Positions 8,251-35,967 of a DNA stretch of 64,000 bases are shown here, piece by piece. The notes under the pieces are model-generated. The model saw only the letters and a program-made list of their open reading frames with translations. It ran no database searches and was not told the DNA's origin. A program made the position numbers and the translations under genes. The stretch comes from Haliotis rubra (Eukaryota). The stretch spans positions 1 to 64,000 of the forward strand of contig NW_025766114.1 of the NCBI RefSeq assembly GCF_003918875.1. The letters are read 5' to 3'. Within the stretch, counting starts at the first letter, position 1. Every line of letters starts with the position of its first letter.

Positions 8251-9401
8251 TATTTGGCTATGTGTGTTTGAATAACTGAACACCTGACAACTACAGCATG
8301 CTGCTCTTCAGCATCTGAACATCGTGTGAAAAAAGTAACCCGTGTTGCAACTCCAGATGCGCTTTTCTAAAGGAATGGAACGCATTTGAATTGCCTGCGG
8401 GGAACTCTAATGCAAGAAGTCAACTTCTGGTGTCAGCACATGTTCCCGTGCGTTTCCGGGTAAACAATTGATTTTCCTTTGGGTTTTACTCAATAATAGA
8501 AAGGGATTTGTTATTTCCATACATCCACCCGAAACTCACTTTGTTGAGTAACTGTTGTATACATATATTTGTGAACTATGTTTTTAAAAAAGCAATACCT
8601 TGTTCCGAAATTTCATTTGTAACATCTGACGTATATGACAGATGTAACATCATATGTTAACTTGATCGGGCGATTACGATAAGGGATACTACATTCGGAT
8701 AAGGATAACTGTCATCCTACATTCATCTGGGAATAACTCACTGTAATACATTTTTCAATATGACTGATCAGGCTGGAGCCAACATGCATTTACGAAATTT
8801 TACTTGATTATTGTTCAGTCTGTTCATAATTTTGTTTAACCAATCAGTCGTTTTGGGGTTTCATGTGCGTGTTTGTTACTCAGTTCTTAATAAGACTAAT
8901 TTAGTTCGGCTAACTCGGCTAATCCGTGATCATGTTGTGTGTTCACATTACTTGGGTTGAAGTTGGGAAAGACCGACATCCTGCAAACAGACAAAAGAGA
9001 GTTAAACATCAACTGTAATACCCATAAGTATGCATTTAATCGCGTAATATATATGTAATAAGTAATTTTACAACAGTTTAATAGTGCTGAATATCCGTAT
9101 TTAGAGGAATCTGCTAACACTTCTAATCCACTTGTCTGTCTGTGTGGACACTGCCTCACACTATCTGTGTTACATGCTCTTGTAGTGAGCCTTTGGTTGC
9201 CATGAGGACATCATTTTATTTCTCCCGAATAATATTACAGATATACCACATTAAACCAAATATAAACAGATCAAGCTAACTTTACAACCAAGTAAAATAT
9301 TAACTGAAATATAGTATTGAAAACTTTCAGCATGTAAAGACAATCTAATTGCATACTTCAAGGCACATTTAGATAACACGCAGTAGGAGTTCATGGGTTA
9401 G

Positions 9402-9683
9402 AGTGAGTGAGTGAGTTAAAATTTATAGTCACATCGGCAATATTTCAGCTCATGAGTAAGATGAACAGGACATGACAACATGATAACCATAATAAAATAC
9501 CAAGGAAACACACATATGGCAATTGAGAAAAATATATCTCATGTTATATGGGGTTAAACTTTGCCAGGAAACTACAAATTCTATTACTTCTTTTGGTTTG
9601 AGTTCCTTCCGGGATTCGAACCGACACTCTCGGAGCAAGGCACGTCGATAGCAGTCTAACCCACTAAGCCACGGAGGGTTCCA
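9402..9683 (-). mobile_element. tRNA-derived SINE with (ACTC)n tail; duplicate at ~33790..34076
   Basis: On the minus strand, A-box (tggcttagtggg) and B-box (ggttcgaatccc) motifs and a LINE-like tail ending in ctcactcactc. Confidence 0.65.
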
Positions 9684-10599
9684 TCAAATGGAAGTCAGAC
9701 AACTGGTAACCGTCTTCTTTTGTGTCCTTCTGACAAGTGTAAATTATCACAGCTCCCAAGGCGGAAGTTTTGAAGACAGTTTTTAGAAAGTAATCAAATG
9801 GAACACGTGTTATATTTGTGGTAACACTTTCTTAGTAAAGTACAGATTGTAGTACCTTTGTGGATGAACAGAATTGTTGTTTGGCATAATGAAAATATGA
9901 ATCAATTCTTGACTTTTCGTAAAACAAATCCGAAGAGCACGCCAGTCTAACAGAAGAAACCATGTTAGGAATAATGACGAAAATCTAATTTAGGTTCTCT
10001 TAAATGGATTGCATTAAGACCGATCAGTATTCTGCTGGGAAGTATCTGCCGACATAACAACCCCAGAGAAATAGTCAACCTTATCGGGCAGAGCTCATCA
10101 TCATCATCATCCAAAGGAGCGGTCATTGCACCTTTGTGATTCCTGAACCAATTCATTTCAGCCATTTTACCTCTTGACTTGTGCTCATTTTTTATATTTT
10201 GAGGTCGAGGTACCGCTGATTGAGTACCTGTGCTCTTCTTATCATATGTGTCGAGTCCTCTTCAACGGCAGTCAGGTCCAAACACACCATGTGCTGTGGA
10301 GACGGAAAAAGACATCAAAATAACATACAACGCACAAAATGGGTGTTACAAAATGTTACAAAAGAATGCTTACTATCTTGAAAAATAGAATCCAGGTCTT
10401 CAGCGTGACGAGGGAACGCTTCAACCACTGGGTTACCCCCTGCCGTCTAATGCATTTGGAGGAAATGATGGTGTACCTTTTGGTGACAATACATTTATAT
10501 CTAACTGGTGAATTGTATTCGTAGACACAAGTTGCAAAGCTTAATCAGTAACATTAGTTAACTATGAAAACTTTAATTATACTAAACCTTTCACAAGGA

Positions 10600-11573
10600 A
10601 AACTGTAAAACACTACCAACAAAACAACACCTTGTAATATATTGTTTTCAACATATTATAATTTTCATATATTTCTTACAAAACAATGTAGTGAGCAAGT
10701 TTTAGCATTTATCGCCACTTTTAACAGAATTCCAATTATACCACCGCGTTTCAGCTGAATATGGGAGGGAAAACAATAGATTCATGTCTCAGACCTTTAC
10801 TCTTTCCGTTAAACCAAGCATCGATGTTCCACCTATGAAATATCTAGAAAACATACATGCAACGAGTCAACAATCACAGATTTCTGATGTACCTAATGAT
10901 CGCAGCTATGCAAAGCGAAACTTGGTGCAGAAGACGTCGGGGCAGCCCAAGCTGTAACATGAAACAATTTATCACCCTATGACCAAGTGACAACAATAAG
11001 CACTTTTTCTGCCAGTACAATTAAACCTTGATGGTATTTGCCGAATAACTCTGCTACACAATCAGTGATTAAAACACTGATGGCAGCTGATCATGTTAAT
11101 ATCATTTAGGGTGTGTTCTCATATGTTCTGCATTTCCCATTAGTCATGATTCCTGGAAATGGTTTTGTACAGGTTAAATTGACATGAGTACCCAACGCCA
11201 TTGCCAGCTTTCATCAATGCTACTGTAAATGACAATGGTGACGTAACATACCCTCAAATCAATATTCAAAGCATTGGGAGATGGGATTCATAATGACAGG
11301 AACACTTAGCGGTATGTTTTTATTCAAGTGTAACATAAACAAGGACAAAAGATCGATACAGGCGTAATGTAGGAGCGCGACATCAAATTGACCAAGCTTT
11401 TCAGTTGTTGATTGTGTAAGCACTACCGATAATGTCTAAAAGGTTTCTCCTGGCCACGAACATTTTTACCAATCCATGAATCATTTCGAAAATCCAGTCT
11501 CCGCGTGTGGCTGAATTCACTGGGGTTGTGCTGTTTATCCTTCATCATTAGTGACGCTGACACACGTTTGAAA
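10600..11573 (+). promoter_or_regulatory. Conserved upstream/5' UTR block of A- and C-type receptor genes
   Basis: Homologous blocks precede R3, R5, R7 and R8 (ctacacaatcagtga; aagct(t/g)ttcagttg; aaaggtttctcc; tgaatcatttc; gtctcc(a/g)cgtgtg). Function is inferred only from position and conservation. Confidence 0.45.
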
Positions 11574-12761
11574 ATGTTTGACCTCTGCAGATGCGTCCTT
11601 ATAGTTTACCTCTGTCCCTTAGCTTTGGGCTCTGTTTCCTACAAGGAGAAAGATTTCCTGGCCAACCTCACCTCGGACTACGACCCCAAGATCCGCCCGG
11701 TGTTAGATGGTTCCAACACGACAGTGAGTATTAGTATGGGGTTGTACTCAATATATTCTCTGGATGAAAAACAGGAAGTGCTCATCTTTAAAGCATGGGT
11801 CTATATGACGTGGAAGGACCAGCTTCTGGTGTGGAACACGACAGATGGCATTCCCGTTGTTGTAACTATGTCACTGGCGGATGTATGGACACCAACCGTA
11901 CTGAATGTTGATTCTGTGACGAATATGAGGTACCTAAAAGATGAAACAGATACAGTGGTTGTCTTTCAGGATGGTACAGTTATATATTCCTACATAGGTA
12001 GGTTTGATACAGGATGCAAGGTCAATATCCAACAGTTTCCTTTCGATCGCCAGACATGTTATTTTCACTTGGAAACATTTTATCCTCCTGCAAGTAAGGA
12101 ACATCTCAAGGTAGTCAACTCGTATGTAAATCTGGAAACATACAAAGAAAACGGAGAATTTCACCTTCTCAGTGCATCAATGACACAGGAGAAATTCACT
12201 CTTCTCAATGTAACTCTTGAATGGATAGAAGTGACCCTTGTCCTGCAAAGACGAACCACCTTCTACATCCTCAACAACATCCTACCCATCGTGTTCCTTT
12301 CCTTTCTTAACATCTTTGTCTTCCTGTTGCCCGAGGAGAGTGGTGAGAAGGTGTCCCTGTGTGTCTCCATCCTATTGTCATATGCCATGTTTCTCAATCT
12401 CATCAACTCCTACCTACCAGCGAACTCCGACCACCTGTGTTTCTTCAGTGTCTACGTCACCCTGCTTGTGTTGATCAGCACACTCACATGTCTCGTCACG
12501 ATCTTCATGCAGTTACTTCACACAAATCTCCAAAGGGAAAATGTCAGTCCAAGATGGCTGCCAATCGCATGGAGATCAGCCAGCAAAGTTGGAATAACCA
12601 AACTACAAGTTAAGACTGATGATGTCTCTCCAAACAAATCGAACGTGAAAGACAATAAGAAAGATGCACTACTCGCCAAGTGCAACAGAGTGGCATTTGG
12701 AACGTTCTTCATCATCACAGCTCTCACTAACCTTATGTTTTTCATTAGCGTATCCCTATGA
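11574..12761 (+). CDS. R1: intronless divergent Cys-loop ligand-gated ion channel subunit (nAChR-like, non-alpha), subtype A, ~395 aa
   Basis: ATG at 11574 begins a signal peptide. Contains YDPKIRPV, LDEK, WKD..L.W, Cys-loop CKVNIQQFPFDRQTC (C-x13-C), pre-M1 RR, four TM helices, and M2 GEKVSLCVSILLSYAMFL. No loop C vicinal cysteines. Confidence 0.95.
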   Translation: MFDLCRCVLIVYLCPLALGSVSYKEKDFLANLTSDYDPKIRPVLDGSNTTVSISMGLYSIYSLDEKQEVLIFKAWVYMTWKDQLLVWNTTDGIPVVVTMSLADVWTPTVLNVDSVTNMRYLKDETDTVVVFQDGTVIYSYIGRFDTGCKVNIQQFPFDRQTCYFHLETFYPPASKEHLKVVNSYVNLETYKENGEFHLLSASMTQEKFTLLNVTLEWIEVTLVLQRRTTFYILNNILPIVFLSFLNIFVFLLPEESGEKVSLCVSILLSYAMFLNLINSYLPANSDHLCFFSVYVTLLVLISTLTCLVTIFMQLLHTNLQRENVSPRWLPIAWRSASKVGITKLQVKTDDVSPNKSNVKDNKKDALLAKCNRVAFGTFFIITALTNLMFFISVSL

Positions 12762-13213
12762 CGGTATTACGCATTACTGCCACTGCTTGTTTCACCTGGA
12801 ATACATGTTTTTGGTCAGTAGATTTGTTTAGTGACATTTTCTATGTGTTTTCACGCACCATTGACAATTATGATGTGTGATGCAATTCTCTACCTGTCAC
12901 TCACAGCACGTTCCCATGCTTTGTTGGATGAACAATTAACTTCAGAATTGAAAGGGATTTGTTATTATCTTTCCTTGCCTCACTTTAGTGAAATTTCATA
13001 TATTTTTTGTGAACTACTTTTTGTTATCGCCAGTGCATTGTCCCATTTTATGACCTATCATTTGTAACATTTAACGTATGTATCTTGACCTGACGACTGC
13101 AGTGATATCGTTTGTAACACCTGATTAGCAATTAGCAGTCCACTGTTTATCAACCTTGTCAATTGTATTTACTCACTATGCAACTATGTATATATTTCCT
13201 TGTTACAACTCTT

Positions 13214-13567
13214 GGACCGCCTCCGTGGTGTAGTGGTTAGAGCGTCCGCCCGGAGAGCGGAAGGTTGCGGGTTCTATCCCCGACCGCGTCATACCAAAGA
13301 CGTTAAAATACGGTACTTGTTGGTCCCTGCCTGGCGCTCGGCATTAATGGGTACAACAAGGACTGGTCGGCTCGGAGTCAGTATAATGTGTCTGAGTGGG
13401 GTATTCATTCTTCACTGCGGCGTGGTATCCCAGTTGGCTAGCACTTTAAAACCAGCTTAAGTCTGAGCTAGTACAAGCAGCCGCAGACACACATACACAC
13501 GCATGCACGTCGTCATATGAGCGAAATATTCTCAAGCACGACGTTAAACCTAATTTCACCTCACCTC
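13214..13567 (+). mobile_element. Full-length tRNA-derived SINE with a core resembling the MetaSINE/MESC domain
   Basis: A/B boxes (tggtgtagtggtta; gggttctatccc), core ataccaaagacgttaaaa...cctgcctggcgctcggcattaa, a cacct-repeat tail, and imperfect TSD tgttac(a/t)actctt. The superfamily call is from memory. Confidence 0.75.
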
Positions 13568-13731
13568 TTCTGTTACTACTCTTAGTATCACTTGCTGTAT
13601 AACGGTGATAGTACCTACACCGAAACGTCGCACTCGCTGCAATAAAGAAGTTGACTATCCATAGAACTTGGTTTTCCTTCACCTATACAACTTCTAAAAA
13701 TGCCTCTCAAAGAAGTTCACCATCTCTCTAG

Positions 13732-13732
<1 letters not shown>

Positions 13733-13796
<64 letters not shown>
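13733..13796. repeat. (CT)n microsatellite
   Basis: About 30 CT units. Confidence 0.98.
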
Positions 13797-13798
<2 letters not shown>

Positions 13799-16470
13799 AC
13801 ATGATTGCTGCTGCTGATAACGCGGCACTCAACCAATCTGCGACACCACTTCTCATCCCCGACACAGACTATAAATCAGTCATGAGAAGTTACATCCATG
13901 ATCTAAAGAAATGGGACACCCAAGTGGTGTAAATAAGTAAATTAAAATTAAACCAACTGTTGATTACACCTAATTGGACTGTCAATCCAGATTTGAAGAG
14001 TTCATTATACGACGATGTCACTGACAACTATAGCATAGTATGGTTCAGTTATACAGCATCTGATCTGAATGGTGTATTCACACCAGATGCCTGTTCTCAA
14101 CGGAAGCATTGTGTCATTAGTTTCACCTGCAGCCAACTCTTATGCAAGAGAAGTCCATATTTGGTGCCAGCTGGTAAGGTTTAGGCTGAAAATTAGTGTT
14201 AAATCTAATCAACTCACTTACTATGTATGATGCCTCTTAATATAGTTATTGTCTAAATGGTATAACCAATGATCACAATACAGCGATAGGATACTACCAT
14301 CAGTTTATCAAACAGATAACATTATGAAATGAAAGAAAGGAAAGGATTTGAACAAATAATTATTTATTTGTATCACAGTATATTCCAACTCAAGTTACGT
14401 CCGTAATGTTTACAATCGCCATACTGGATTTTCTGTGGCAATTTTCTTTTAACAAACAGCGTCGGGTTCCAGGGTTTACTCACAGTTGAATTCTATTTTT
14501 CGAATTTCGAGAGATGTTTGTGGTAATACTATCTCTGCTGTCTAAGTACCTAAGTAAGTAATTGTTAGAAAAACTATGTTGCCATAAGGATGACTTGTAA
14601 CTGTCGTTTATTCATGTGTGATTCATTCCGACTGAGTATTCCAAGATCGAAATGATTTCAATTCAGTTACAGTTATAACACGCCCCTTGTTTGGCCGTAA
14701 AATACGATAGTTCACAGTCGGGGGTGACAGTGGAGGTGAGGTTGGGGAGTTTTTGGCGGAGGCATATGAGGGGTTTCCTACCTGTTATGTGTACATTCTA
14801 ATGTGGTCCTCAGAGTTACCGTTTCTGAGAATCACCAAGAACAGACACATTTGAAGAATGACGACCTACACATATTGCAAACTTACAAATAAAGTATGAA
14901 ATCACCTTGTGTATTCAAATCTAGAATGTCCTAAAATGTTCACAAATACAGATTCAATCGTTATATCAAATATTTTAAACAGAAGTGATCGCTGAATATT
15001 CTGAAACTTGTACACCAACTGTTCAACATGAACAAACGCTTTTAAGCTTATATAACATTTAATACTTTACCATGGAAGCCTTTCTTCAATATGGCAGAAT
15101 AAAAACAGTGTTTTAGTCTGTTGGGTTTTCCGTTATCTAAATATAACCGATAATACTTATAGTATAAACAGTGTTGTATACATAATTTATCAACCGTTCT
15201 TCTCATACAACTTGAGCCTTATACTTCATCAAAATCACTTGACTACGAAACCAGTGAATACAACTCATGATATTGGTATAGAATCATGCAAATAACAATA
15301 TAACATGCCGTCTCTTTCTCTCCTTCGGAATATCATGTTTGTCATTGTCCGATTACACATCGTTAGTAGAAGTAATTTCAATGTAGACAATGCCAAAATT
15401 CATTACTTCTTTAGGAGAAGTAGTTTCGTAAGCGTTAAATGTCCAGTAATTCTCAACAACAATGCCAACCTTCAAGAATTCAGTGATGGTGTGACATAGC
15501 ACACTAAGGTCAATATTCAAAGCTTCTTCAAATATTTTCCAAACATCAATTAGGACCAGCCGGGAAGGGTCTTCTTAGTCAGGTTTTACACAGTCTGTTC
15601 GAAACATCAACATTGTCATGGCAATTAGTGTTAACGATGCAACATCAAATTGAGAGAGCTACTCAGATGACCATGGATCACAGAAATACAACTAATGATC
15701 AAACGGGCATTGCTTTGCTCGTTGCTGTTGGAGACTAATAATATATTTAAAACGCTTTGAATCATTCCTAAGACTGAATCTCCTTTGCGCTGAGACTGTG
15801 CTACGTTATTTCCTGTGCTCTGCACTGAGACTGTGCTACGTTGTTTCGTGTGCTCTGCACTGAGGCTGTGCTTGTTTGGATATGTATGCCATGCATAGAA
15901 GTATCTTCATCCTTCCTTTATAGCTTCATCAAATATTTTCCAAACATCAATTAGAACCAGCCGGGAAGGTTCTTCTTTGTCATGTTTTACACAGTCTGTT
16001 CTAAAACATCTCTTTCTCTCCTTCAGGATATCATATGTTTTTCATATCTCCGATTATAATTCATTAGTGGAAGTAGTTTCAATGTAGACAGTGCCAAAAT
16101 TCATTACTTCTTTAGGAAATCTCAATAAGGTATGATACTCATGTCAATATTCATAGTTTGTTCCATACACCAATTAGGACAAGCCTGGAAGCTTCTTATC
16201 ATTTGTGTCTTACCCATGCAATCTCCAAACATCGGCATTGTAATGTCAATTAACGCTAATGACGCAACATCATATTGATAGAGCTATTCAGTTGTTCATA
16301 TTGTACAGAAATTCAGATAATGACCAAACGGGTCTTGCTTTGCCCCGTTGCTCCTGGATACCAATATAATACCTATATAATGCCTTGAATCATTTCTAAA
16401 ACTGAATCTCCTTAGCACTGAGGCCGCTGTGTGTTTTCTCCAACATTAATCACGTGAATATTGTTTGGAC

Positions 16471-17673
16471 ATGTTTGCCATACACAGATGTGTCTCCATG
16501 TTACTTCTCTGTCACGTCACTCTGGGCTCTGTTTCCTACAAGGAGAAAGATTTCCTTGCGAACCTAACCTGGAACTATGACCCCAAGATCCGCCCGGTGT
16601 TAGATGGCTCCAACACCACAGTGAGTATCGGTATGATATTGCACTCAATTATATCTCTGGATGAAAAACAAGAAGTGCTCAGCTTTAAAGCATGTGTTGT
16701 AATGACATGGAAGGACCAGCTTTTGGTGTGGAACTCGACAAGTGACATTCCCACTGCAGTTACTATGCCCCTATCGGACATGTGGTCGCCAACCATACTG
16801 AATGTTGATTCTGTGACAAACTTGAAGTACCTAAAAGATGACAGGGATACCGTGCTCGTCCATCAGGATGGCACAGTTGTGTATACTTTCACAAGTAGGT
16901 TTGACACAGAATGCAAAGTAAATATCCACCAATTTCCTTTCGATCGCCAGACATGTAATTTTCACTTGGAAACATTTTATGCCCGTGTTAGTAAGGAATT
17001 TCTTAAGGTAATCGACTCGTATGTAAATCTGGAAACATATCAGGAAAACGGAGAATTTATCCTTCTCAGTGCATTAATGGCATTGACAAAATTCCAGATA
17101 AATGACTTCAATGGCAACTGGATAGAAGTGACCCTTGTCCTGCAAAGACGAACCACCATCTACATCCTCAACAACATCCTGCCCGTCGTGTTCCTGTCCT
17201 TTCTGAACGTCTTCGTTTTCTTAATGCCCGAGGAGAGCGATGAGAAGGTGTCTCTGTGTGTCTCCATCCTGTTGTCATATGCCATGTTCCTGACCCTCAT
17301 CAACTCCTACCTACCAGCGAACTCCGACCACCTGTGTTTCTTCAGTGTATACGTCACCCTGCTTGTGTTGATCAGCACATTCATATGTCTCGTCACAATC
17401 TTCATGTTGGTACTTCACACAAACCTTCAAAGGGGTAAAGTTAGTCCAAGATGGGTGCTTGTTGCTTGGGGAGAAGACAGCAAAGTTAGAACACCTGAAC
17501 CACGGGTTAGAACTGATGACGTCTCTTCCAACCAATCCGATGTAAAAGACACAGCAAACAAATCTGACATGAAGGATGCAATAGTCACCAAGTGCAACAG
17601 AGTGGCATTTGGAACGTTCTTCACACTCACAGTACTCATTAATCTTATATTTTTCATTTCCGTATGCCAATGA
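16471..17673 (+). CDS. R2: intronless divergent Cys-loop receptor subunit, subtype B, ~400 aa
   Basis: Signal peptide MFAIHRCVSMLLLCHVTLG, Cys-loop CKVNIHQFPFDRQTC, four TM helices. Loop D Trp is replaced by Cys; the M1-M2 linker reads PEESDEK. Confidence 0.95.
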   Translation: MFAIHRCVSMLLLCHVTLGSVSYKEKDFLANLTWNYDPKIRPVLDGSNTTVSIGMILHSIISLDEKQEVLSFKACVVMTWKDQLLVWNSTSDIPTAVTMPLSDMWSPTILNVDSVTNLKYLKDDRDTVLVHQDGTVVYTFTSRFDTECKVNIHQFPFDRQTCNFHLETFYARVSKEFLKVIDSYVNLETYQENGEFILLSALMALTKFQINDFNGNWIEVTLVLQRRTTIYILNNILPVVFLSFLNVFVFLMPEESDEKVSLCVSILLSYAMFLTLINSYLPANSDHLCFFSVYVTLLVLISTFICLVTIFMLVLHTNLQRGKVSPRWVLVAWGEDSKVRTPEPRVRTDDVSSNQSDVKDTANKSDMKDAIVTKCNRVAFGTFFTLTVLINLIFFISVCQ

Positions 17674-18088
17674 AGGACGACTGTCAGTGACGGACTGCCA
17701 TTGCTTATTTCACATACAGACAGAGCCAAACGAAGATGAATGCTTGATACATCAGTAGATATGCTTTTGATAAACATCATTCACTTACACGAATGAATAT
17801 GACGTGTGGGCCAAGAGTACTATCTTTTTACATCCATTACTTATGTGACTTATTGACAATCGAAGAAGAATACATTGGATTAGCCAGTAGGTATATATGT
17901 GTCATGTCTTGTGTGTGCTTTGAAACTTTGCTGTCATTGGGGAGTTTGTGAATTGTGTGTGTCAAACTTATGTTATGAGGATGTCTTTTTGTTAATTGTA
18001 AGTTCACATTAATTAACTTTTAACTATTATGGGTCACAAAAGTTTAAAGCGCTGAAGTGTGAATTTGAACTCACACCTTCTATTGAAC

Positions 18089-18122
18089 CAGAGACCATAT
18101 AATAGATAGTATATGGTCTCTG
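18089..18122. mobile_element. 34-bp hairpin micro-insertion with 7-bp TSD (copy at 25043..25076)
   Basis: attgaac-cagagaccatata atagatag tatatggtctctg-attgaac: a 13-bp perfect inverted repeat flanked by a direct repeat. Confidence 0.7.
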
Positions 18123-19297
18123 ATTGAACTTAGGCTATGTGTTTTCACTTACTCTATGTGTTAAGAGTAGGTACCTCCCTTTGATTTTTGCTTCCGGTGT
18201 CTTCGGTGGGATTCAGGAAATTCTGAGAAGATGGTGGTGTGGCATAGCTTTGGTCAGAACACTCTATAACTGTGTAATAGGTATCTAAGGGGTGGTTGCT
18301 GAGGTGTATGGAGGACGCCTTTGGATTTACACTCATCTGTCTAACGTTTCAAGACCGACTCCTCAAGAGGCCTCGTCAACAGTGAACTTTCAACAGCTGT
18401 CAACAAACTTCAATCAGTATCTCTACAAGGATCAAGACTTTGGTGACTATAGATTTTTAGTTAATATTTTAGATTTGTGACCCAATCGTATTGTATTAGA
18501 AATCTGTACTGCCATTCATTGTAACCTTGTTTATTTTTTATTCAATATATAGTTGAATATTATATGATGTGTGTTTTATTTTGCTGCTTTAAAGGGGACT
18601 CACAAGCCTTTAATCACAGTAATTACCAAAGAATCATACATTTAATTAGTCATTGGGGTGTGTGTGAATGTTGTGTGTCCATATGATGGAATAAATTTAG
18701 TGTTAACGATTGCTATTGCATGCTATTGCAGTACAATTTCCTATTGTACTGTACAATAATCTCCTCACACATCTGTCTCTCTATCCTTCTTAACAGTGTA
18801 AGAACCTAAAGTGAAACGTCGCTCTCACTGCAATAAAGAATTTGTTCATCCATATATTGTTATCCTTCCTTACTGCTCCCACTTCTAAATGCTTCTCAAA
18901 ATCGTTATGTTTTTGCCACCGTTAGTAATATTTCAGCAATGGGCTTCACACATTGTACCCATGTGGGGAATCGAACCCGGGCCTTCGACGTGACGAGCGA
19001 ACGCTTTAACCAGAAGGCTACCCTCACCGCCCCCTATAATTTTGAGATATATGATCTGAGACTTTGGACTGACAGGCGGACGGGCAGGCATACATTACTC
19101 TAACCACTAATATTATATACCTGTGAAATGGGGAGAAAGGGGTATCCCGACAGTAAGCCAGAAGCGCGAAAAGGCAAAAACAAAAGATAAAAAATACCCT
19201 ACATCTGACATATATCATGTTATACAGTAAACAGGAAGTTGCCATCCATATGTTCATCTGATATATTCACCAACTTCTAAATGCCTCTCAAGAATTA

Positions 19298-20841
19298 CAC
19301 TGGCCCAAAAAAGAAACGCATAGGTGAAATCCAGTGTTATCAGTGATGCTTTAGTAACTTAAATTACACAAAAAGTAATAATCATAGAGCAATAAAAATC
19401 CACACAGGTATTGGGACATGTGTATCCAAAAACATACAGTCATTCACAGTGGTATTGAGAGTCTCTGTTTTTGATGGCACGGTCACAAAGTCAGTATCTG
19501 GTGTGACCACCACGAGCCTCAATCACTGCTCTGCATCGCTTGGGCATAGACTGTATAAGACGTCGGATCCGCCGTTGTGGGAGTCTTCTCCACTCATCCT
19601 GCAACGCATCGACAAGCTGTTGATGTGTCTGTGGTTGCGGCTGTCGGCGTCGTACACGTTGATCCAATTGGTCCCACAAATGTTCAATTGGGTTAAGATC
19701 CGGAGATTTTGAAGGCCATGGAAGAACTGTTATGTTGTTGATGGCAAGGAAATCTGTTGTAATGCGTGCTGTATGCGGTCTTGCGTTGTCATGCTGAAAA
19801 ATTTCTCTTCTAGCGTCAATTACGGGAATAACATGACGTACCAGGATTTCATCACGATAGCGCACAGCATTCAAATTCCCTTGGACATGCACCAGCTCTG
19901 TTCTGTCATTCACAGATATGCCTGCCCACATCATTACACCTTCGGCGCCGTGTCTGTCGACCTGACGAACACACTGTCGAGCATATCTTTCATTTCGACG
20001 TCTGTAAATCCGCATCCTGCCATCGTGTCAATACAGCATAAACCGCGACTCGTCGCTGAACCTGATCCTCCTCCAGTTCAAGAGGGTCCATGGCCGAGCG
20101 TTCCTGCTCCATTGAAGACGTGCACGACGATGGTGGTGTCGCAGAACAGGTCCTGTATGTGGTCGCATTGGTCGGATTCCATGCTCTCTTAGGCGATTCC
20201 TGATGGTTTGTGCAGAGACTCGACGCAGCCCAGGAACATTGTCGGCGGTGTACGCTGCAGTGACGATCCGATTTCGCAGATGAAACACCAGGATGAAGCG
20301 GTCTTGCGCTGGGGGTGGCACCCTTGGTCTCCCACTCCTAGGACGATCTCTGGTCGAGTTGTGCTGCGTGTAACGCTGCCAGAGACGGGAAATCGTACTC
20401 TACCTCACGTTTAGATGTCTGGCAACTGATGACTGGCTTTCTCCAGCTTCCAAGTGTCCAATGGCTCTGTTTCTGCTTTCTTCGTTTAGTCGTGGCATCT
20501 TGAGGGTCGCATATACAGAATTTCGAAGAATGAATCGCAACAGGACTGCTGGCTTTTTATACCCATCAGTATCAAGATTCAGATCCCGTATTTGCACGTG
20601 CATCATGCTTTCAGATTTTACGGGGATTTTTTCATCATACTTTGCAGAGTATACGGGGATTTTTTCAAGGTGCTGTGTTTTGGCGAATAATCACCAAAGG
20701 TTGTTTTTGCGTGTGTTGGATAATTGTATGGGCTATATTCACACTTAATATAAACATTGACAGTCATTCCATGCCATATTTTTCGAAACAATCTACTTTG
20801 AAGATCAGAATTCAGCTATGCGTTTCTTTTTTGGGCCAGTG
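19298..20841 (-). mobile_element. Tc1/mariner transposon, full length (1544 bp), transposase disrupted
   Basis: Perfect 26-bp TIRs cactggcccaaaaaagaaacgcatag with TA on both sides. Transposase starts at ATG 20498 (MPRLNEESRNRAIG) and includes FSDESRF, FQHDNA, SPDLNPIEHLW and GGHTRY, with internal stops. Confidence 0.96.
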
Positions 20842-22662
20842 TACATCTGACATGTGTTGATAAAACACGCCCATAAGCAACTTTTTTACCAAATACTCCA
20901 GTATGTGTCGACATGTGGCTGAACCATAGGACAGGTGCAGAAAAACGAATTCACTAAATGGTATAGTTTTACGTCACTTTCAGCAATACTCAAGCGTATG
21001 ATACCAGAAATGGGATTCACACTGTTATCTTTTTAGAAATTTGATGCGGGTCTTCAGCGTGACGAGGGAAGCTTCAACCCTCGGCTATCCCCGAGTGCTG
21101 CTGCCTAGTGCAATCGTGATGTATCTTAAGCAGATTCACACTCTCTCACCAGCTGGGGTACATAACATTTATATCTAACTGTGAAATAAATATGATTATT
21201 TACTGTTATATGTCCACCTGTGGGGGTTTGTAAGTCCCAAAATATTCAAAGTAAATTAAGCTTACCGAATATGTTAAAGCGCAGCATTTTTTGTGATTTT
21301 AAGTTATGGCTAAATTTACCTAAAATCACCAGTGGCTGAAAGGATGGAGTAAATCCGGCTATGGTCCATGCAGGTAGCAAAAGTACTGTAAGTCCCCATG
21401 GTCCCTAGCATGGTGATCTACCTTTAGTTGTTGGAGATCTCGAGTCCGTTTTTGTATTGCATTGTCTGTACTATTTGTATAATTTTAAGAGTTACTTGCT
21501 TGTTTTAATTCTGTGATGATCTACTTATTTTACTCTTATTTCTTTTATAATTTAATTGCGCTTTGTGAATTTTTAAGTCTCAATATGCTTGAAATTACGC
21601 CAATGTGACTATACATTATAACTTATTCACTCGTTTATTGTTATGTAATACAATGTAGCTCCTGAAATTTAGTTTTTATAAACCTGAACACTTTTCACTA
21701 AAATAATTGTAAAACACTACCACTAACACATCACCTTTATATATTGTTTTAAACATTTGATACTTATATGTTTTACAAAACAATGTAATAAGCATGTTGT
21801 ACTTAACGCCACTTTTAGCAGTATTCCAGTTACACCACGGTGTATCAGCTGAAAATAGAGGGAAAAAATCAGGTCTCAGATGTGTCCTTTTTCCGTCAAA
21901 CCAACAAGCACCAGTGTGCTACGTATCACATACCAAGAAGCATACACGCGACGAAGCGAGATTCTAACCCCAATCACAGATTAATGGTTTGCCCAAGGAT
22001 CGCAACTCTACAAAGGGAATAGTAATTAACAAGTAATTGTCATCGGCACTTGTGTTAACAAAGCTAAATAAATATATAATCCCATCATCCACTGACAACA
22101 AAAAGCAATGCTTTACTGTCAGTGCATTTAAACCTTTGTACCTGATGCCGAATCATCGTGCTACACAATCAGTGATTAAAACTCTGTGATACTGATACTG
22201 ATCCACTTGAGGTACGTCATCATTTTTGGATACGGCCCATTAGACATGGTTACTGGAAATTGATTTGTGAAGCCTAAAATCTCATGAGTACCCATCGCCA
22301 TTGCTAACATTCATCAGCACTATAGTGAATGGCAAACATACCCGCAAGTTATTATTCATTGTGAGATATGATTCACACAACCCCAGGGACATTTCACGGT
22401 ATGCTCCTATTCATTTCTAACATATACATTGTACAAGAACAAAACATCGATTTCCAACCATTAGGCCTAATGTAGAGTGCGACATCGAATTGACAAAGCT
22501 GTTCAGTTGCCGATAGCGATAGCACCTCCGATGTTTAAATGGTTTCTCTTAGACAGGAGCAGTTTTACCATGCCATGAATCATTTCAAATATTAAGTCTC
22601 CACGTGTGGCTGGTTCACTGTGATTGTGTTATATATCCTTCACTCTGACAACGTTTTTGGAA

Positions 22663-23868
22663 ATGTTACGAAATTGTGACCTTTTCATTTCACTCTGTCT
22701 CTGTCGCTTGACCATGGGCTCTGTTTCCTACAAAGAGAAAGATTTCCTGGCCAACCTCACTTGGAACTACGACCCCAAGATCCGCCCGGTGTTAGATGGT
22801 TCCAACACGACAGTGAGTATCAGTATGGGGTTGTACTCACTTTTATCTCTGGATGAGAAACAGGAAGTGCTCAGCTTTAAAGCATGGGTTTCAATGTTGT
22901 GGAAGGACCAGCTATTGGTGTGGAATACGACAGATGACATTCCCTTTGCAGTCACTATGCCCTTGCCGGATGTATGGACTCCAACCGTACTGAATGTTGA
23001 TTCTGTGACGAGTTTGAAGTATCTGAAAGATGAAACAGATACCGTGTTTGTCTATCAGGATGGTACAGTTGCGTATTCCTACGTAGGTAGGTTTGACACA
23101 GGATGTAAGGTGAATATTCAACAGTTTCCTTTCGATCATCAAACATGTACATTTCATTTACAAATATTGTATACCCAAGTAACCAAGGAATATCTTGAGG
23201 TAACATCCACGAATGTCGTTCTGGATGTATACAGGGAAAACGGAGAATTTAACCTTCTCAGTGCATCCATGGTGTTACAGGAGTTCACTACTCTCGGTGT
23301 TACTCAACCCTGGATTGAAGTTACATTCGTCCTAAAGAGACGAACCACCTTCTACATCCTCAACAACATCCTTCCTGTCGTGTTCCTGTCCTTTCTCAAC
23401 TGCTTCGTATTCTGTTTGCCCGGGGAGAGTGGTGAGAAGATGTCATTGTGTGTCTCCATCCTGTTGTCCTATGCCATGTTCCTGACCCTCATCAACTCCT
23501 ACCTACCAGCGAACTCCGATCACCTGTGTTTCTTCAGTGTCTACGTCACCCTGCTTGTGTTGATCAGCACACTCACATGTCTCGTCACAATCTTCATGCT
23601 GGCACTTCACACTTATTTACAAACGGGCAAAGCTTGTCCAAGATGGCTGCCGGTCGCTTGGAGGTCTGATAGCAAAGTTGGAACAAGTGAACCATGGGTT
23701 AAGAAGGAAGACATAGCTCCAAACCAATCTGATGTAAACGGTAAAGCAAACAATAAGTCGGAAATGAAGGACTTGATTATCGCCAAGTGTCACAGAGTGG
23801 CATTTGGAACGTTCTTCACACTGACACTCCTCATTAATCTTATATTTTTCATTTCCGTATCCCCGTGA
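22663..23868 (+). CDS. R3: intronless divergent Cys-loop receptor subunit, subtype C, ~401 aa
   Basis: Signal peptide from ATG 22663, Cys-loop CKVNIQQFPFDHQTC, M2 GEKMSLCVSILLSYAMFL, four TM helices, no vicinal cysteines. Confidence 0.95.
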   Translation: MLRNCDLFISLCLCRLTMGSVSYKEKDFLANLTWNYDPKIRPVLDGSNTTVSISMGLYSLLSLDEKQEVLSFKAWVSMLWKDQLLVWNTTDDIPFAVTMPLPDVWTPTVLNVDSVTSLKYLKDETDTVFVYQDGTVAYSYVGRFDTGCKVNIQQFPFDHQTCTFHLQILYTQVTKEYLEVTSTNVVLDVYRENGEFNLLSASMVLQEFTTLGVTQPWIEVTFVLKRRTTFYILNNILPVVFLSFLNCFVFCLPGESGEKMSLCVSILLSYAMFLTLINSYLPANSDHLCFFSVYVTLLVLISTLTCLVTIFMLALHTYLQTGKACPRWLPVAWRSDSKVGTSEPWVKKEDIAPNQSDVNGKANNKSEMKDLIIAKCHRVAFGTFFTLTLLINLIFFISVSP

Positions 23869-24356: not shown

Positions 24357-24649
24357 TTCACATGTCTCGTCACAATCTTCATGTTGGTACTTCACACAAA
24401 CCTTCAAAGGGGTAAGGTTAGTCCAAGATGGGTGCTTGTTGCTTGGGGAGAACACAGCAAAGTTAGAACACCTGAACCACGTGTTAGAACTGATGACGTC
24501 TCTTCCAACCAATCCGATGTAAAAGACTCAGCAAACAAGTCTGACATGAAGGATGCAATAATCACCAAGTCAACAGAGTGGCATTTGGAACGTTCTTCAC
24601 ACTCACAGTACTCATTAATCTTACATTTTTCATTTCCGTATGCCAATGA
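24357..24649 (+). pseudogene. 3' fragment (end of M3 to M4) of a B-type receptor, copied from R2 with its downstream flank
   Basis: Near-identical to 17380..17673, with a 1-bp deletion before M4. The flank continues to match 17674..18787 up to 25552. Confidence 0.9.
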
Positions 24650-25555: not shown

Positions 25556-26518
25556 TGGAAGGACCAGCTTTTGGTGTGGAACACAACGAATGACATTCCC
25601 GTTGTTGTAACTATGCCCTTGGCGGATGTATGGTCTCTAACCGTAATAACTGTTGATTCTGTGACGAATATGAGGTACCTAAAAGATGAAACGGACATGG
25701 TGCTTATCTATCAGGATGGTACAGTTACATATACCTACATAGGTAGGTTTGACACAGGATGCAAGGTCAATATCCAACAGTTTCCTTTCGATCGTCAGAC
25801 ATGTAATCTTCACTTTGACACATTTTATGCTCCTGCAAGTAAGGAATATCTGAACGTAGTCGACTCGTATGTAAATCTGGAAACATATCAGGAAAACGGA
25901 GAATTTCACCTTCTCGGTGCATCAATCACACGGCAGAAATACACCCTTCTCAATGAATCTCATAACTGGATAGAAGTGACCCTTGTCCTGCAGAGACGAA
26001 CCACCTTCTACATCCTCAACAACATCCTTCCTGTCGTGTTCCTGTCCTTTCTTAACATCTTCGTTTTTCTGTTGCCCGAGGAGAGTGGTGAGAAGGTGTC
26101 TCTGTGTGTCTCCATCCTGTTGTCATATGCCATGTTCCTGACCCTCATCAACTCCTACCTACCAGCTAACTCCGATCACCTGTGTTTCTTCAGTGTCTAC
26201 GTCACCCTGCTTGTGTTGATCAGCACACTCACATGTCTCGTCACAATCTTCATGCAAATTCTTCACACAAATATTCAAAGGGTCAAGGCCAGACCAAGAT
26301 GGCTTCCAAACGCATGGAGATCAGAAAACAAAGTTGGAACAACCAAACTACAGACTGATGATGTCTCTCCAAACAAATCGGACGTGAAAGACAAAGCAAA
26401 TAAGAAGTCAGAAATGAAGGATGCTATAATCACCAAGTACAACAGAGTGGCATTTGGAACGTTCTTCACACTCACAGCTCTCATTAACCTTATTTATTTC
26501 ATTAGCGTATCTCAATGA
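25556..26518 (+). pseudogene. R4: 5'-truncated Cys-loop receptor, subtype A-like, otherwise open frame
   Basis: Starts abruptly at WKDQLLVWN, fused to the duplicated R2 flank. It lacks the signal peptide and ~60 residues of the extracellular domain; the Cys-loop and four TM helices are intact. Confidence 0.88.
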
Positions 26519-28487: not shown

Positions 28488-30033
28488 AACTAGTGTCCAA
28501 AAGAAACGATACCACGTGTTGCAAAGATCACTAAATTAAAACAAAACAACATAGACATTTCAAATTGATATCTTTCATTAGATAAATGATTTTATGGCAT
28601 GTGTACAAAAAGTCATGGCAATCAAAGATTTACAATCATTAACACAGGGCTTTAAACGACGTGTGGTGCCAAAAATTGAAATTTCATTTTAGCACAGTGG
28701 AGGAGGCGAGTGAGGGTAGTCTCTGAAAACAGTCTTACTGCCACTTTTGTACCGGGTATGTCCACCAGCAGCTGCGATACATGCCATGACACGCCACCGA
28801 GCTGATGACGTCAAACGTCGGATGACGTTAGGGGTGATTCGCTGCCACTCATCCTGGAGACAATGTTCCAATTGTTGCAGGTTGGCTGGGGGCGCAGGGC
28901 GTTTTCTGATTTTCCGATTGAGGTGATCCCATATGTGCTCAATGGGATTCACATTCGGTGAACTCGCTGGCCATAGCAAAACCTGTAAGTTGGCGTTGGC
29001 AAGGAAGTTCTGGGTCAATCTTGCCGTATGAGGCCTAACGTTATCGTGCTGGAACACGATTCCTCCTGGATGCTGTTGGGCGAATGGCTGCACGACTGGT
29101 CGTAAAACCTCATCATGGTAACGCTGTGCATTCAAGTTCCCCCGAATAATGACGAGCCTCCTTTTCACATCACCGCAGATATCTCCCCACACCATTACAC
29201 CTCCGCCTTCAAATGCATGGACTTGCTGGATGCAGTTCGGCGCCAAACGTTCACGAACTCTTCGGTATACTCGCTGCCGACCATCGTTCTTGTAAAGGCA
29301 AAACCGGCTTCCGTCCGAAAACAAGACACGTGCCCAGTTTCGACGTTGCCACAGCCGAACGCGCCTGGCCCATATTAATCGGTTGACTCTGTTTTGACGT
29401 GTCAGGTAGACTACGCGGTAGGGGCGACGTGCACGGATACCATATGCCTGCAGTCTCCTGTAGACGGTTTGTCGACTGATCCGGTGTCCCAGTCCCGTCG
29501 CCGCCGTTAACGTCGCAGGAACGAAGCGGTTACGTAGGTGAAGTAACCGGATGTGGTTGTCTTGAATAGGCGTGGTCACCCGGGGTCTCCCGCTTCTCGG
29601 CCTGTCTGTTGTTTGGCCTGTTTGACGCAACCGTCGCATTAACCTGGTAACGGTTATGCGCGCGCATCCAAACGTTCTTGCTACAGCGCCGTGTGATGCT
29701 CCTCCCTGTCGGACCATTCCAACGGCTCTTTCTCTCTCGATCGCTGTCAACGTGCCATTTCTTTTGTGTGCTTTTTACTGCTGTGGGCACAACGCGTCGG
29801 ACCAGCAGTTTTATACAGTTCATCTGCTCGTGCATTTTGTGCTACACGACTTAACGTCATTTTGAGTATTCGTGCGATTGCTTCTTAAGTGAATACATGT
29901 TACCGGTTTTTTCGATCGAATACGTTTGGTTAGGAACGTGGGATACACAGAAATATTTTTTTTCTCCAAAAAGTATCATTAATTTAAAAATATTGAAAAA
30001 AATATTTGGTATCGTTTCTTTTGGACATGAGTT
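28488..30033 (-). mobile_element. Tc1/mariner transposon with nearly intact transposase
   Basis: TIRs aact(ag/ca)tgtccaaaagaaacgatacca. A 353-aa ORF carries HTH, FSDGSRF, FQHDNV, SPNVNPIEHIW and GGHTRY. The ATG at 29758 is out of frame by 1 nt. The element is absent at the paralogous site (~7750). Confidence 0.95.
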
Positions 30034-35500: not shown

Positions 35501-35967
35501 ATTTAGGGTGTGTTCTAATTTCTGCATTTCCCATTAGTCATGATTCCTGGAAATGGTTTTGTACAGGTTAAATTAACATGAGTACCCAACGCCATTGCCA
35601 GCTTTCATCAATGCTACTGTAAATGACAATGGTGACGTAACATACCCTCAAATCAATATTCAAAGCATTGGGAGATGGGATTCATAATGACAGGAACACT
35701 TAGCAGTATGTTTTTATTCAAGTGTAACATAAACAAGGACAAAAGATCGATACAGGCGTAATGTAAGAGCGCGACATCAAATTGACCAAGCTTTTCAGTT
35801 GCTGATTGCGTAAGCACTACCGATAATGTCTAAAAGGTTTCTCCTGGCCACGAACATTTTTACCAATCCATGAATCATTTCGAAAATCCAGTCTCCGCGT
35901 GTGGCTGAATTCACTGGGGTTGTGCTGTTTATCCTTCATCATTAGTAACGCTGACACACGTTTGAAA

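Follow-up and report, generated by a model that had tools for sequence, protein, structure and literature searches.

Nicotinic-receptor-like gene arrays of abalone with an apparently dismantled acetylcholine site and a probably diversifying ligand pocket

Known relatives of the abalone genes

Receptors of this kind are not new as such. They are already known from the expansions of nicotinic acetylcholine receptors (nAChRs) in molluscs and from the chemotactile receptors (CRs) of cephalopods. The latter include CRT1 and CRB1 (van Giesen 2020, Allard 2023, Kang 2023), which are cited here as portrayed in PMC11526382, PMC10338036 and bioRxiv 10.1101/2025.10.28.685082. In octopus, the CR pocket is hydrophobic and subject to diversifying selection (PMC11526382; bioRxiv 10.1101/2025.10.28.685082). 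As far as these accounts describe them, CRs resemble the abalone family in many respects: both are nAChR-derived, intronless and arranged in tandem arrays, keep a cation-channel scaffold, have lost acetylcholine-coordinating residues, and have a hydrophobic pocket that is partly conserved and partly, in abalone probably, under diversifying selection. The abalone genes, however, belong to another molluscan class (vetigastropods), and form a Haliotis-specific clade. Neither the 60 best PDB sequence matches of copy 1, the abalone gene studied most closely here, nor its top 50 structural ones include CRT1 chains; vertebrate alpha7, alpha4beta2 and muscle receptors are among them.

The mollusc expansions described by Jiao et al. 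2019 (PMC6896357) are likewise intronless tandem genes of high diversity that form species- or genus-specific clades, and by analogy retroposition plus tandem duplication is a plausible origin of the abalone array. That study focuses on bivalves, and the terms 'aromatic', 'vicinal', 'loop C', 'ligand-binding' and 'positive selection' do not occur in its main text; the pocket-focused selection signal in abalone is additional. The parts of the MolluscaGenes nAChR survey (bioRxiv 2026, PMC13174522) used here report 'CR-like' sequences from gastropods, bivalves and chitons and divergent clades substituted at agonist-coordinating positions, for which a possible ionotropic chemosensory role is proposed. 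The survey is transcriptome-based, and its authors call the assessment of ligand sites preliminary; Haliotis does not appear in its main text, and genomic arrays or a site-level selection analysis are not among the topics of the parts used here.

Alpo4 of Alvinella (eLife 2023, PMC10338036) is an orphan lophotrochozoan, homopentameric nAChR-like channel that does not respond to acetylcholine. A sterol-derived detergent occupies its orthosteric site and an adjoining hydrophobic crevice. Like the abalone proteins it lacks the Cys pair of loop C, but it retains an aromatic box (F103, W159, Y199, Y205, W65), most of which the abalone family has lost. It is also phylogenetically isolated (closest homologue 37% identical) rather than a member of a tandem family, and no selection analysis is reported for it (PMC10338036).

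The loop C Cys pair is equally absent from the vertebrate non-alpha subunits (beta2, beta4, gamma, delta, epsilon). The share of these subunits in the binding site consists of loops D, E and F, and variation of this complementary face sets the pharmacology. Their genes are conserved, intron-rich and single-copy, whereas those of abalone are intronless and tandem. We know of no vertebrate non-alpha subunit that has lost the Trp of loop D, or that is under diversifying selection.

The gene array and its state

The window, a 64,000-nt stretch of DNA of the blacklip abalone Haliotis rubra, contains eight tandem, intronless nicotinic-receptor-like genes in head-to-tail order, which fall into the subtypes A, B and C. 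All gene copies and loops discussed here lie on its forward strand. Copies 1, 2, 3 and 8 are intact. Copy 1 (subtype A; 11574-12761) is a single-exon CDS of 395 aa. Copy 2 (subtype B; 16471-17673; 400 aa) has CVVMT in loop D and QINDFNGN at the tip of loop C; copy 3 (subtype C; 22663-23868; 401 aa) has LQILY in loop B and the tip TTLGVTQP, and copy 8 (subtype C; 57740-58945; 401 aa) the tip TTLGFTQP.

The remaining copies are broken in different ways. The A-like copy 4 (25556-26518) is truncated at its 5' end; its homology starts at residue 80, signal peptide and loop D both being missing, and it is presumed to be a pseudogene. Copy 5 (subtype A; 35968-37155) is 97% identical to copy 1 and has an in-frame stop at 36463-36465, where the Leu166 codon TTG has become TAG. 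Copy 6 (39248-40981) has a subtype B extracellular domain (ECD), loses its frame past TM3 at about 40207 and resumes C-terminal homology at 40736-40981, beyond some 530 bp of foreign sequence; its TM block is not B-like, and the copy is broken or chimeric. Copy 7 (subtype C; 48186-49358) has a frameshift near 49340, at the start of TM4, which yields the ending ...FFTDNPH*. A stray, frameshifted C-terminal fragment of another copy, from the end of TM3 to TM4, lies at 24360-24640. The loop C tips of eight paralogues had been listed beforehand; all eight copies are indeed there, but truncation, stop, interruption and frameshift have broken four, so that the functional repertoire of the window comes down to four genes of three subtypes. 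The array has evolved by birth and death plus gene conversion.

The nearest relatives of the family are exclusively Haliotis proteins (70-81% identity), followed by Lottia (36%) and Lymnaea (33%). Thirteen further intact single-exon copies were found in H. cracherodii, H. asinina and H. rufescens; head-to-tail arrays are present in four Haliotis genomes, and many TM blocks of this Haliotis-specific expansion are near-identical. The selection tests described below comprise 17 full-length copies from the four species, 4 from H. rubra and 13 from the others.

The run searches returned no run recorded as RNA that contained the abalone array genes. Three small runs that are possibly RNA gave no CDS coverage except for a single contig of 175 nt (12666-12840), which overlaps copy 1 at its 3' end; this does not imply that the genes are silent. 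The same three runs also cover a high-copy repeat at 13174-13773. One further run contained 6% of the words of 16471-23868.

The channel scaffold

Copy 1 is composed of a signal peptide, the ECD, TM1 to TM3, a short intracellular loop and TM4. Pfam recognises the ligand-binding domain PF02931 (E = 8.7e-35) and the TM domain PF02932 (E = 5.7e-15) in it, and in each of the seven long ORFs both exceed their cut-offs. Human alpha7 ranks first (E = 8e-39) among the 60 best PDB sequence matches (HMMER); the top group is made up of alpha7, alpha3, alpha6, alpha4 and beta2 nAChRs, and beta4 is also a good match. The AF2 model of copy 1 (pLDDT 81.9) has a beta-rich ECD and four TM helices and matches nAChR chains structurally with Z ~32.

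The Cys-loop (C148-x13-C162 with FPFD; 12015-12059) is intact and conserved; C-x13-C and FPFD are invariant in all abalone copies. The TM1-TM3 block (residues 229-322; 12258-12539) retains the GEK motif (-1') and the 9' Leu, and the M2 alignment has ESGEK and the 9' Leu in all copies. Glu at -1' in the GEK motif is a mark of cation selectivity, and the 9' Leu is the gate. By these features the abalone genes are predicted to encode Cys-loop, nicotinic-receptor-like subunits of cation channels. Their scaffold (Cys-loop, FPFD, four TM helices, -1' Glu and 9' Leu) is held by purifying selection.

TM1-3 in particular is under strong purifying selection, which explains most of its conservation. There, the tree length is 2.8 substitutions per codon and dS between subtypes is 0.25-0.37, about one third below that of the ECD. 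Homogenisation at the DNA level was considered as the main cause of the conserved TM block and rejected, since it fits neither these values nor an omega of 0.16.

The acetylcholine site

The interval under study (11790-12255) corresponds to residues 73-227 of copy 1; it starts at loop D, takes in the rest of the ECD and forms the ligand-binding core. In the HMMER alignment with alpha7, W55 corresponds to W75 of copy 1, Q57 to Y77, Y93 to V112, L109 to V129, Q117 to I137, L119 to S139, W149 to F169, C190/C191 to L210/L211 and Y195 to L215; Y188 stands opposite a gap. The same mapping came out of an independent MAFFT alignment that included alpha9/alpha10 proteins, in which WxPDIxLY, GSWTY and YGCC are found.

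Loop D on strand beta2 (W75-T79; 11796-11810) reads WVYMT, CVVMT, WVSML, WIVMV or WVVME. Subtypes A and C retain its Trp, TrpD of the aromatic box; in subtype B it is Cys, also in the H. asinina orthologue of subtype B (L005:10001-11206). Loop A (W105-D113; 11886-11912) reads W(T/S)PT(V/I)LN(V/I), in the truncated copy 4 instead WSLTVITV, and is rather conserved inside the family; V112 of copy 1 replaces Y93 (TyrA) and T108 replaces D89. In loop E, the beta5'-beta6 region (T127-G142; 11952-11999), we find VIYSYIG, VVYTFTS, VAYSYVG, VTYTYIG and VAYTYLG. Loop B (L166-P172; 12069-12089) is LETFY in subtypes A and B and LQ(I/M)LY in subtype C, which puts Phe (F169 in copy 1) or Leu in place of W149 (TrpB). 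The loop F region extends from V181 to E195 (12114-12158).

Loop C (M203-W217; 12180-12224) has no YxCC. Since it lacks two residues relative to alpha7/alpha10, its homology at the level of residues is uncertain by 1-2 positions, yet no alignment register restores YxCC. There is no Cys in loop C of any copy, hence no vicinal pair, and the positions of TyrC1 (Y188) and TyrC2 (Y195) are non-aromatic. The eight tips are TLLNVTLE, QINDFNGN, TTLGVTQP, TLLNESHN, TLLNVTHD, QINDTNGN, MTLGVTQP and TTLGFTQP. An N-x-S/T sequon starting at N212 occurs in 10 of 21 copies and is missing from subtypes B and C.

The aromatic box is thus dismantled. What is left of it is the Trp of loop D, except in subtype B, and a Phe in loop B, and a loop C disulfide is lacking. 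The abalone copies have neither the Cys pair nor the full aromatic box that characterise an acetylcholine-binding subunit of the alpha type. Over 19 pocket positions, their hydropathy ranges from +0.3 to +1.6 with 0-2 charged residues, versus -0.2 to -1.2 and 3-5 charged residues at the same positions of alpha9/alpha10.

The original prediction had been made by eye. Every loop string that it quoted, from A to E, is present in the sequence, and its alpha7 numbering agrees with both alignments, as do the exchanges of Trp55 for Cys in subtype B and of Trp149 for Phe (A, B) or Leu (C). Beside the Val and Ile that it gave for Tyr93, Leu is found there as well. The comparison of hydropathy and charge bears out that the pocket is richer in aliphatic and poorer in charged residues than that of the acetylcholine-binding alpha9/alpha10 subunits.

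Variability and selection in the pocket

With the 13 copies of the other species included, variable sites are not spread evenly over the ECD. Mean entropy is 1.55 at a-priori pocket positions versus 0.64 in the remaining ECD (Mann-Whitney p = 1.7e-6), and loops A-G account for 18 of the 21 ECD sites in the top decile of variability (Fisher p = 5e-7), a strong enrichment in the binding loops of the interface. The most variable stretch is the tip of loop C (209-216). Pooled dN/dS is 0.72 in the loops versus 0.21 in the non-loop ECD; the loops as a whole therefore do not exceed 1. The orthologues of H. rubra and H. asinina have signatures of their subtypes in common, e.g., Cys75 in B and TTLG in C, which indicates that the pockets are maintained and not merely drifting. 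Assembly or frameshift noise is an unlikely source of the differences among the tested copies; the ingroup ECD alignment is free of gaps, and the subtypes recur in the assemblies of three other species.

Site models place about 6-9% of the ECD codons in a class with omega ~3. The LRT was 32.6 for M1a/M2a and 41.4 for M7/M8 with a single tree, 32.3 and 41.3, respectively, with three segment-specific trees, and 44.4 with five segment trees. A mixture of omega and synonymous rates gave 2dlnL = 10.6, a value exceeded in none of 108 null simulations (parametric bootstrap). Two independent species subsets, H. rubra with H. asinina (LRT 8.8) and H. cracherodii with H. rufescens (LRT 18.5), flag overlapping pocket sites. 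TM1-3, taken as control, had no selected class (omega 0.16, M2a LRT 0). The predicted class of sites with dN/dS above 1 thus exists and survives recombination-aware trees, variation of the synonymous rate and the bootstrap. The code for the site models was home-made; it reproduced the lnL of iqtree, kept relative branch lengths fixed and used naive instead of Bayes empirical Bayes posteriors. The long-branch copies Hruf_L6b and Hcra_L4d account for about two thirds of the LRT, which drops to 11.1 (p = 0.004) when both are removed. FEL-like tests per site, with the synonymous rate left free, are weak because only 17 sequences are available: site 141 is clearly significant, 61 and 95 are marginal, and sites 79 and 213 have high synonymous rates too.

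Recombination within the ECD is evident (PHI p ≤ 0.001). It can inflate the LRTs of site models; here, the segment-specific trees gave no drop.

The flagged sites comprise, in alpha7 numbering, Q57, S59, N111, Q117, L119 and P121, further the start of loop F and the tip of loop C. Six of 13 belong to the a-priori core set (p = 1.4e-4) and 11 of 13 to the loops (p = 1.9e-4). In copy 1, the latter are residues 52, 77, 79, 131, 137, 139, 141, 181, 211, 213 and 215. Y77 (Q57) and T79 (S59) in loop D are hypervariable; in loop E the variable residues 131, 137, 139 and 141 (N111, Q117, L119 and P121) follow an i/i+2 periodicity. In the AF2 model, 77/79, 131 and 137/139/141 fall into predicted beta-strands, where they alternate with other residues. 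The complementary face carries eight of the 11 loop-located sites (52, 77, 79, 131, 137, 139, 141, 181). Loops A and B are comparatively conserved. With pocket membership assigned through homology to alpha7, the replacements appear to cluster at pocket-lining alternate residues of beta2 (loop D) and beta5'/beta6 (loop E), at the start of loop F and at the tip of loop C.

Possible functions

We consider it fairly probable that the pocket of the abalone family is under diversifying selection and that the family forms a repertoire of ligand-gated channels without an acetylcholine site, in the manner of cephalopod CRs. Judged by its residues, the principal face of these subunits would have lost the ability to bind acetylcholine. 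Selection would diversify what the pocket recognises, and the resulting channels may differ in ligand preference between subtypes and species. Their ligands would probably be less polar, uncharged molecules. The suggestions of the original prediction that each paralogue has different ligands, and that these are hydrophobic, may be right, but they are read from the pocket residues. By analogy, the evolutionary logic would be that of the cephalopod CRs.

Heteromers with non-alpha-type subunits would be just as compatible with the position of the selected sites, which is mainly on the complementary face. The abalone proteins could be complementary partners in heteromeric acetylcholine receptors, their (-) face with loops D, E and F being paired with a canonical alpha subunit encoded elsewhere; its variation would then tune agonist or toxin pharmacology and create no new classes of ligands. 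The missing Cys pair, as in vertebrate beta, gamma, delta and epsilon subunits, the loop D Trp of subtypes A and C, the eight complementary-face sites out of 11, and beta2 and beta4 among the good PDB matches all speak for it. Yet subtype B does without this Trp in two species, the most variable stretch, the tip of loop C with the flagged sites 211, 213 and 215, belongs to the principal face, the best sequence match is the homomeric alpha7, and a family expanded specifically in Haliotis, many of its TM blocks being near-identical, is unlike conserved structural subunits. We regard this arrangement as unlikely. Somewhat more doubtful still is relaxed constraint, i.e., a ligand role that is lost or a pseudogenisation under way, with loops that drift near-neutrally and an omega above 1 that arises artefactually from gene conversion, variable synonymous rates and a few decaying copies. 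Four broken copies out of eight in H. rubra would be expected from decay; a loop dN/dS of 0.72, recombination by the PHI test, the fall of the LRT from 32 to 11 upon removal of the two long-branch copies, mostly non-significant FEL-like tests and the lack of RNA reads over the CDS in the three small possible-RNA runs (the 175-nt contig excepted) point the same way. However, the omega > 1 class persists with three and five segment trees, with synonymous-rate variation (0/108 in the bootstrap) and in both species subsets. Full-length ORFs in 17 copies of four species, with omega 0.21 in the non-loop ECD and 0.16 in TM1-3, do not look like decay; the flagged sites lie in ordered beta-strands on one face rather than in floppy loops, and the pocket motifs of the subtypes are conserved across species.

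A role in stress or immune signalling, or in the avoidance of toxins, of the sort put forward for the nAChR expansions of bivalves, would make the pocket variation the outcome of an arms race with toxins, e.g., predator peptides or algal metabolites directed at nicotinic sites, a glycan on loop C acting as a shield. Glycosylation of loop C blocks the binding of alpha-neurotoxins in some vertebrate muscle receptors, which counts in favour of this role. So does the sequon at the loop C tip of 10 of 21 copies, as does the expression of expanded mollusc nAChRs, which is reported to respond to stress and immune challenge (Jiao et al. 2019, PMC6896357). But a receptor that no longer binds acetylcholine is not an obvious target of toxins, and subtypes B and C lack the sequon. 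This role appears very improbable.

Returning to the chemoreceptor-like repertoire, it may be carried one step further, with much less confidence. Abalone, perhaps vetigastropods in general, might have evolved their own nAChR-derived ionotropic chemoreceptors in parallel to the cephalopods. The conserved inner pocket of loops A and B would then provide a common core for hydrophobic ligands, and the diversifying complementary face and loop C tip would tune it differently in each subtype and species, for example, to algal metabolites or to cues for settlement, feeding or mating.

Meaning for abalone and molluscs

Abalone rely on chemical cues for settlement, feeding and spawning, and the receptors for these cues are largely unknown. 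They would matter in animals that are of concern to both aquaculture and conservation. The array offers three natural subtypes (A, B and C) to express and candidate positions that may determine specificity (77, 79, 131, 137, 139, 141, 181, 211, 213 and 215 of copy 1). Should the family turn out to be merely accessory or decaying, it would still be a clean example of birth and death plus gene conversion in a receptor array. If, however, the channels are ligand-gated and their pockets diversify, the conversion of a neurotransmitter receptor into an environmental chemoreceptor would not be peculiar to cephalopods but a recurrent molluscan solution.

Fold and ligand pocket

An uninterrupted ORF of 395 codons (11574-12761, + strand), copy 1 of a tandem array of intronless nicotinic receptor-like genes, contains the interval 11790-12255. 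It matches both Cys-loop receptor domains of Pfam (PF02931, E = 8.7e-35; PF02932, E = 5.7e-15), and among solved structures the sequence comes closest to human alpha7 (E = 8e-39), followed by the alpha3, alpha6, alpha4 and beta2 nicotinic subunits. The AlphaFold2 model (mean pLDDT 81.9) displays the expected beta-sandwich and four transmembrane (TM) helices; the muscle, alpha4beta2 and alpha7 receptors superimpose on it at Z of about 30-32. The Cys-loop is present (C148-x13-C162 with FPFD), as are, in M2, ESGEK at its cytoplasmic end and the 9' Leu. Taken together, these features of sequence and model predict the scaffold of a cation-selective nicotinic-type channel subunit.

The ligand pocket is a different matter. 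The original prediction held that it had been systematically rewritten, and the loop motifs quoted for this view are all found in the window. In a HMMER alignment, the alpha7 numbering of which was verified on W55, Y93, C128/C142 and W149, the residues W55, Q57, S59, D89 and Y93 of alpha7 correspond to W75, Y77, T79, T108 and V112 of copy 1; L109, N111, Q117, L119 and P121 to V129, F131, I137, S139 and I141; W149 and Y151 to F169 and P171. Y188 meets a gap, while C190/C191 pair with L210/L211 and Y195 with L215, a loop C pairing that is uncertain by 1-2 positions. An independent MAFFT alignment, which includes alpha9/alpha10 proteins with WRPDIxLY, FGSWTY and YGCCxxPY, agrees in loops A, B and D. 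Here loop C of the abalone copies is two residues shorter and contains neither Cys nor Tyr, whatever the register. Of the five positions of the aromatic box, subtypes A and C thus keep one and subtype B none, its loop D Trp having become Cys in H. rubra and in the H. asinina orthologue alike. By either alignment, the aromatic box is dismantled. A nicotinic site that lacks TyrA, TrpB and the two tyrosines of loop C can no longer form the cation-pi box that holds a quaternary amine; judging from sequence, it is thus a safe inference that acetylcholine (ACh) no longer binds at the principal face.

The pocket had also been called more aliphatic, and the composition of 19 pocket positions bears this out, although the index is crude: mean Kyte-Doolittle hydropathy is +0.3 to +1.6 in the abalone copies versus -0.2 to -1.2 in alpha9/alpha10, and the abalone copies have 0-2 charged residues there versus 3-5 in the ACh-binding alpha9/alpha10. 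An N-x-S/T sequon (N212-V-T in copy 1, 12207-12215) marks the loop C tip in 10 of the 21 Haliotis copies, namely A-type copies, copies of the Californian clade and the broken B-type copy 6; among the 21 it is found in no intact subtype B and in no subtype C copy. A glycan at this site would cover the pocket entrance.

Variability and selection

Variability was scored over 209 positions of the mature extracellular domain (ECD), 17 of which had been assigned to the pocket a priori. Mean entropy is 1.55 bits at these 17 positions and 0.64 elsewhere in the ECD (p = 1.7e-6). Variable sites are not spread evenly over the domain: the ligand-binding loops A-G hold 18 of the 21 most variable ones (p = 5e-7), and NG86 dN/dS is 0.72 for the loops against 0.21 for the ECD outside them. 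Taken as whole segments, loops C, B and F vary most. Within loops D and E it is mainly alternate residues that vary (77, 79; 131; 137, 139, 141). The strands concerned are beta by DSSP in the AlphaFold2 model, and such a pattern would be expected of one sheet face. Loop A matches the rest of the ECD in conservation (p = 0.43). The loop B segment is more variable (p = 0.011), yet an HLxTFY-like motif is recognisable in most copies.

Site models were run on 17 intact copies with self-written GY94-F3x4 likelihood code (lnL -4535.30 vs -4535.27 by iqtree). The likelihood ratio test (LRT) yields 32.6 for M1a/M2a and 41.4 for M7/M8, with 6-8% of codons at omega 2.7-3.2. Recombination is detected in the ECD (PHI p <= 0.001) and the trees of three ECD segments disagree; the models were therefore refitted with segment-specific trees. 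Three segments give LRTs of 32.3 (M1a/M2a) and 41.3 (M7/M8), five segments 44.4 (M1a/M2a). The class of sites with dN/dS above 1, which had been proposed as a check, is thus found in M2a and M8, also with segment-specific trees. Removal of two long-branch copies (Hruf_L6b and Hcra_L4d) lowers the LRT to 11.1 (p = 0.004). It is 8.8 (p = 0.012) for H. rubra plus H. asinina (sites 77, 79, 137, 181) and 18.5 (p = 1e-4) for H. cracherodii plus H. rufescens (sites 79, 131, 141, 211, 213). TM1-TM3, the negative control, are clean (omega 0.16, LRT 0).

Thirteen sites have a posterior > 0.8: 34, 52, 77, 79, 95, 131, 137, 139, 141, 181, 211, 213 and 215. The a-priori core set contains six of them (p = 1.4e-4), the loops 11 (p = 1.9e-4). 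A per-site test with free synonymous rate, which has little power, leaves only 141 significant (p = 0.002) and 61 and 95 marginal; sites 79 and 213 are fast at the synonymous level too. A non-parametric mixture of omega and synonymous rate puts 8.9% of the weight at omega > 1 (mean 3.3) and raises 2lnL by 10.6 relative to a mixture in which omega may not exceed 1. None of 108 data sets simulated under the latter reaches 10.6 (95th percentile 6.2).

We regard the case for diversifying selection, focused on residues that line the pocket, as good but not overwhelming; the signal lies chiefly on the complementary face and at the loop C tip. There are three main rival readings. The abalone copies could be complementary subunits of heteromeric ACh receptors, the pocket could be under relaxed constraint, or the family could have a toxin- or stress-related role.

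The TM1-TM3 protein (12258-12539 in copy 1; also the other copies, the public Haliotis proteins P0010 and P0011 and the outgroup at locus L004) is near-invariant, even in Haliotis paralogues of only ~48% overall identity. Between subtypes its dS is 0.25-0.37, about one third below the 0.41-0.67 of the ECD. Strong purifying selection explains most of this uniformity; some gene conversion perhaps contributes.

The array and its relatives

A tblastn search of the window with copy 1 finds eight copies, all on the + strand, and one stray C-terminal fragment. Copies 1 (subtype A), 2 (B, 16471-17673), 3 (C, 22663-23868) and 8 (C, 57740-58945) are intact. Copy 4 (A-like, 25556-26518) is without its first ~80 codons, copy 5 (A, 35968-37155) has a TTG>TAG stop at 36463-36465, and copy 7 (C, 48186-49358) a frameshift where TM4 begins. 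Copy 6 (39248-40981, B by its ECD) loses the frame past TM3. In the ECD it shares 97% identity with copy 2, but in the TM1-3 block only about 90% with every other copy (dS 0.26 vs copy 2), and C-terminal homology restarts, shifted, about 530 bp downstream; the gene appears to be chimeric and broken.

Copies 5 and 6 are products of a recent segmental duplication of one A and one B gene (8434-17420 vs 32832-40197, 96-98% identity, intergenic DNA included). Both genes of the second block are broken, as is the neighbouring copy 7, and ~1.3 kb (13100-14422) occur in the first block only. Because of an N gap at 42992-43186, a haplotig mis-join may be involved. Between the array halves lies an uninterrupted Tc1/mariner-type transposase ORF of 353 aa (28689-29750, - strand; DDE_3, HTH_Tnp_Tc3_2). 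A very high-copy repeat at 13174-13773 reaches a summed contig depth of millions in DNA runs and thousands in small possible-RNA runs; the tRNA-like GGTTCGATCCC-type motif in its loose ends suggests a SINE. A (GA)n-type microsatellite (13694-13865) shows as ERERER... in ORF lists. Two identical 83-aa ORFs (31304-31555 and 31956-32207), 652 bp apart, indicate a tandem duplicated segment. As to expression, the array genes appear in no run recorded as RNA among those searched; in possible-RNA contig sets, coverage is limited to one repeat and a 175-nt piece of the copy 1 3' end.

The nearest database proteins are all from Haliotis, followed by Lottia (36% identity) and Lymnaea (33%). Six loci of H. 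cracherodii, H. asinina and H. rufescens added 13 intact ingroup copies, each a single exon, and, as an outgroup, two copies of about 50% identity; the ingroup ECD alignment is gap-free. In the codon tree the H. rubra subtypes A, B and C each cluster with H. asinina genes (bootstrap 100 for B and C), and both species share the A-B-C gene order; the subtypes are thus older than the split of the two. Copies of Californian species form a clade of their own. The public gene models P0006, P0007, P0013 and P0009 of H. cracherodii, H. asinina and H. rufescens comprise the TM domain only or span several genes. The DNA beneath (L003:10001-17903, L004:10001-23679, L005:10001-11206, L006:10001-11206) contains intact single-exon ORFs of 401-419 aa, and automatic annotation therefore under-reports the family.

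Comparison with known receptors

Intronless, tandem, lineage-specific expansions of nicotinic receptors in molluscs have been described (Jiao et al. 2019, PMC6896357); the main text contains none of the pocket-residue and positive-selection terms looked for. Cephalopod chemotactile receptors, likewise derived from nicotinic receptors, have a hydrophobic pocket with sites under diversifying selection and a conserved inner region (PMC11526382; bioRxiv 10.1101/2025.10.28.685082). As a functional analogue they come closest. CRT1, one of these receptors, is absent among the PDB sequence and fold matches listed for copy 1. In Alpo4, an orphan lophotrochozoan receptor, a sterol-like molecule can sit in the orthosteric site (PMC10338036). 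The main text of a 2026 preprint presents gastropod "CR-like" sequences and clades with substituted ligand-site residues; Haliotis is not mentioned there (PMC13174522). The abalone family is thus of a kind already known. What is new here is the evidence for selection at the level of sites and the list of positions.
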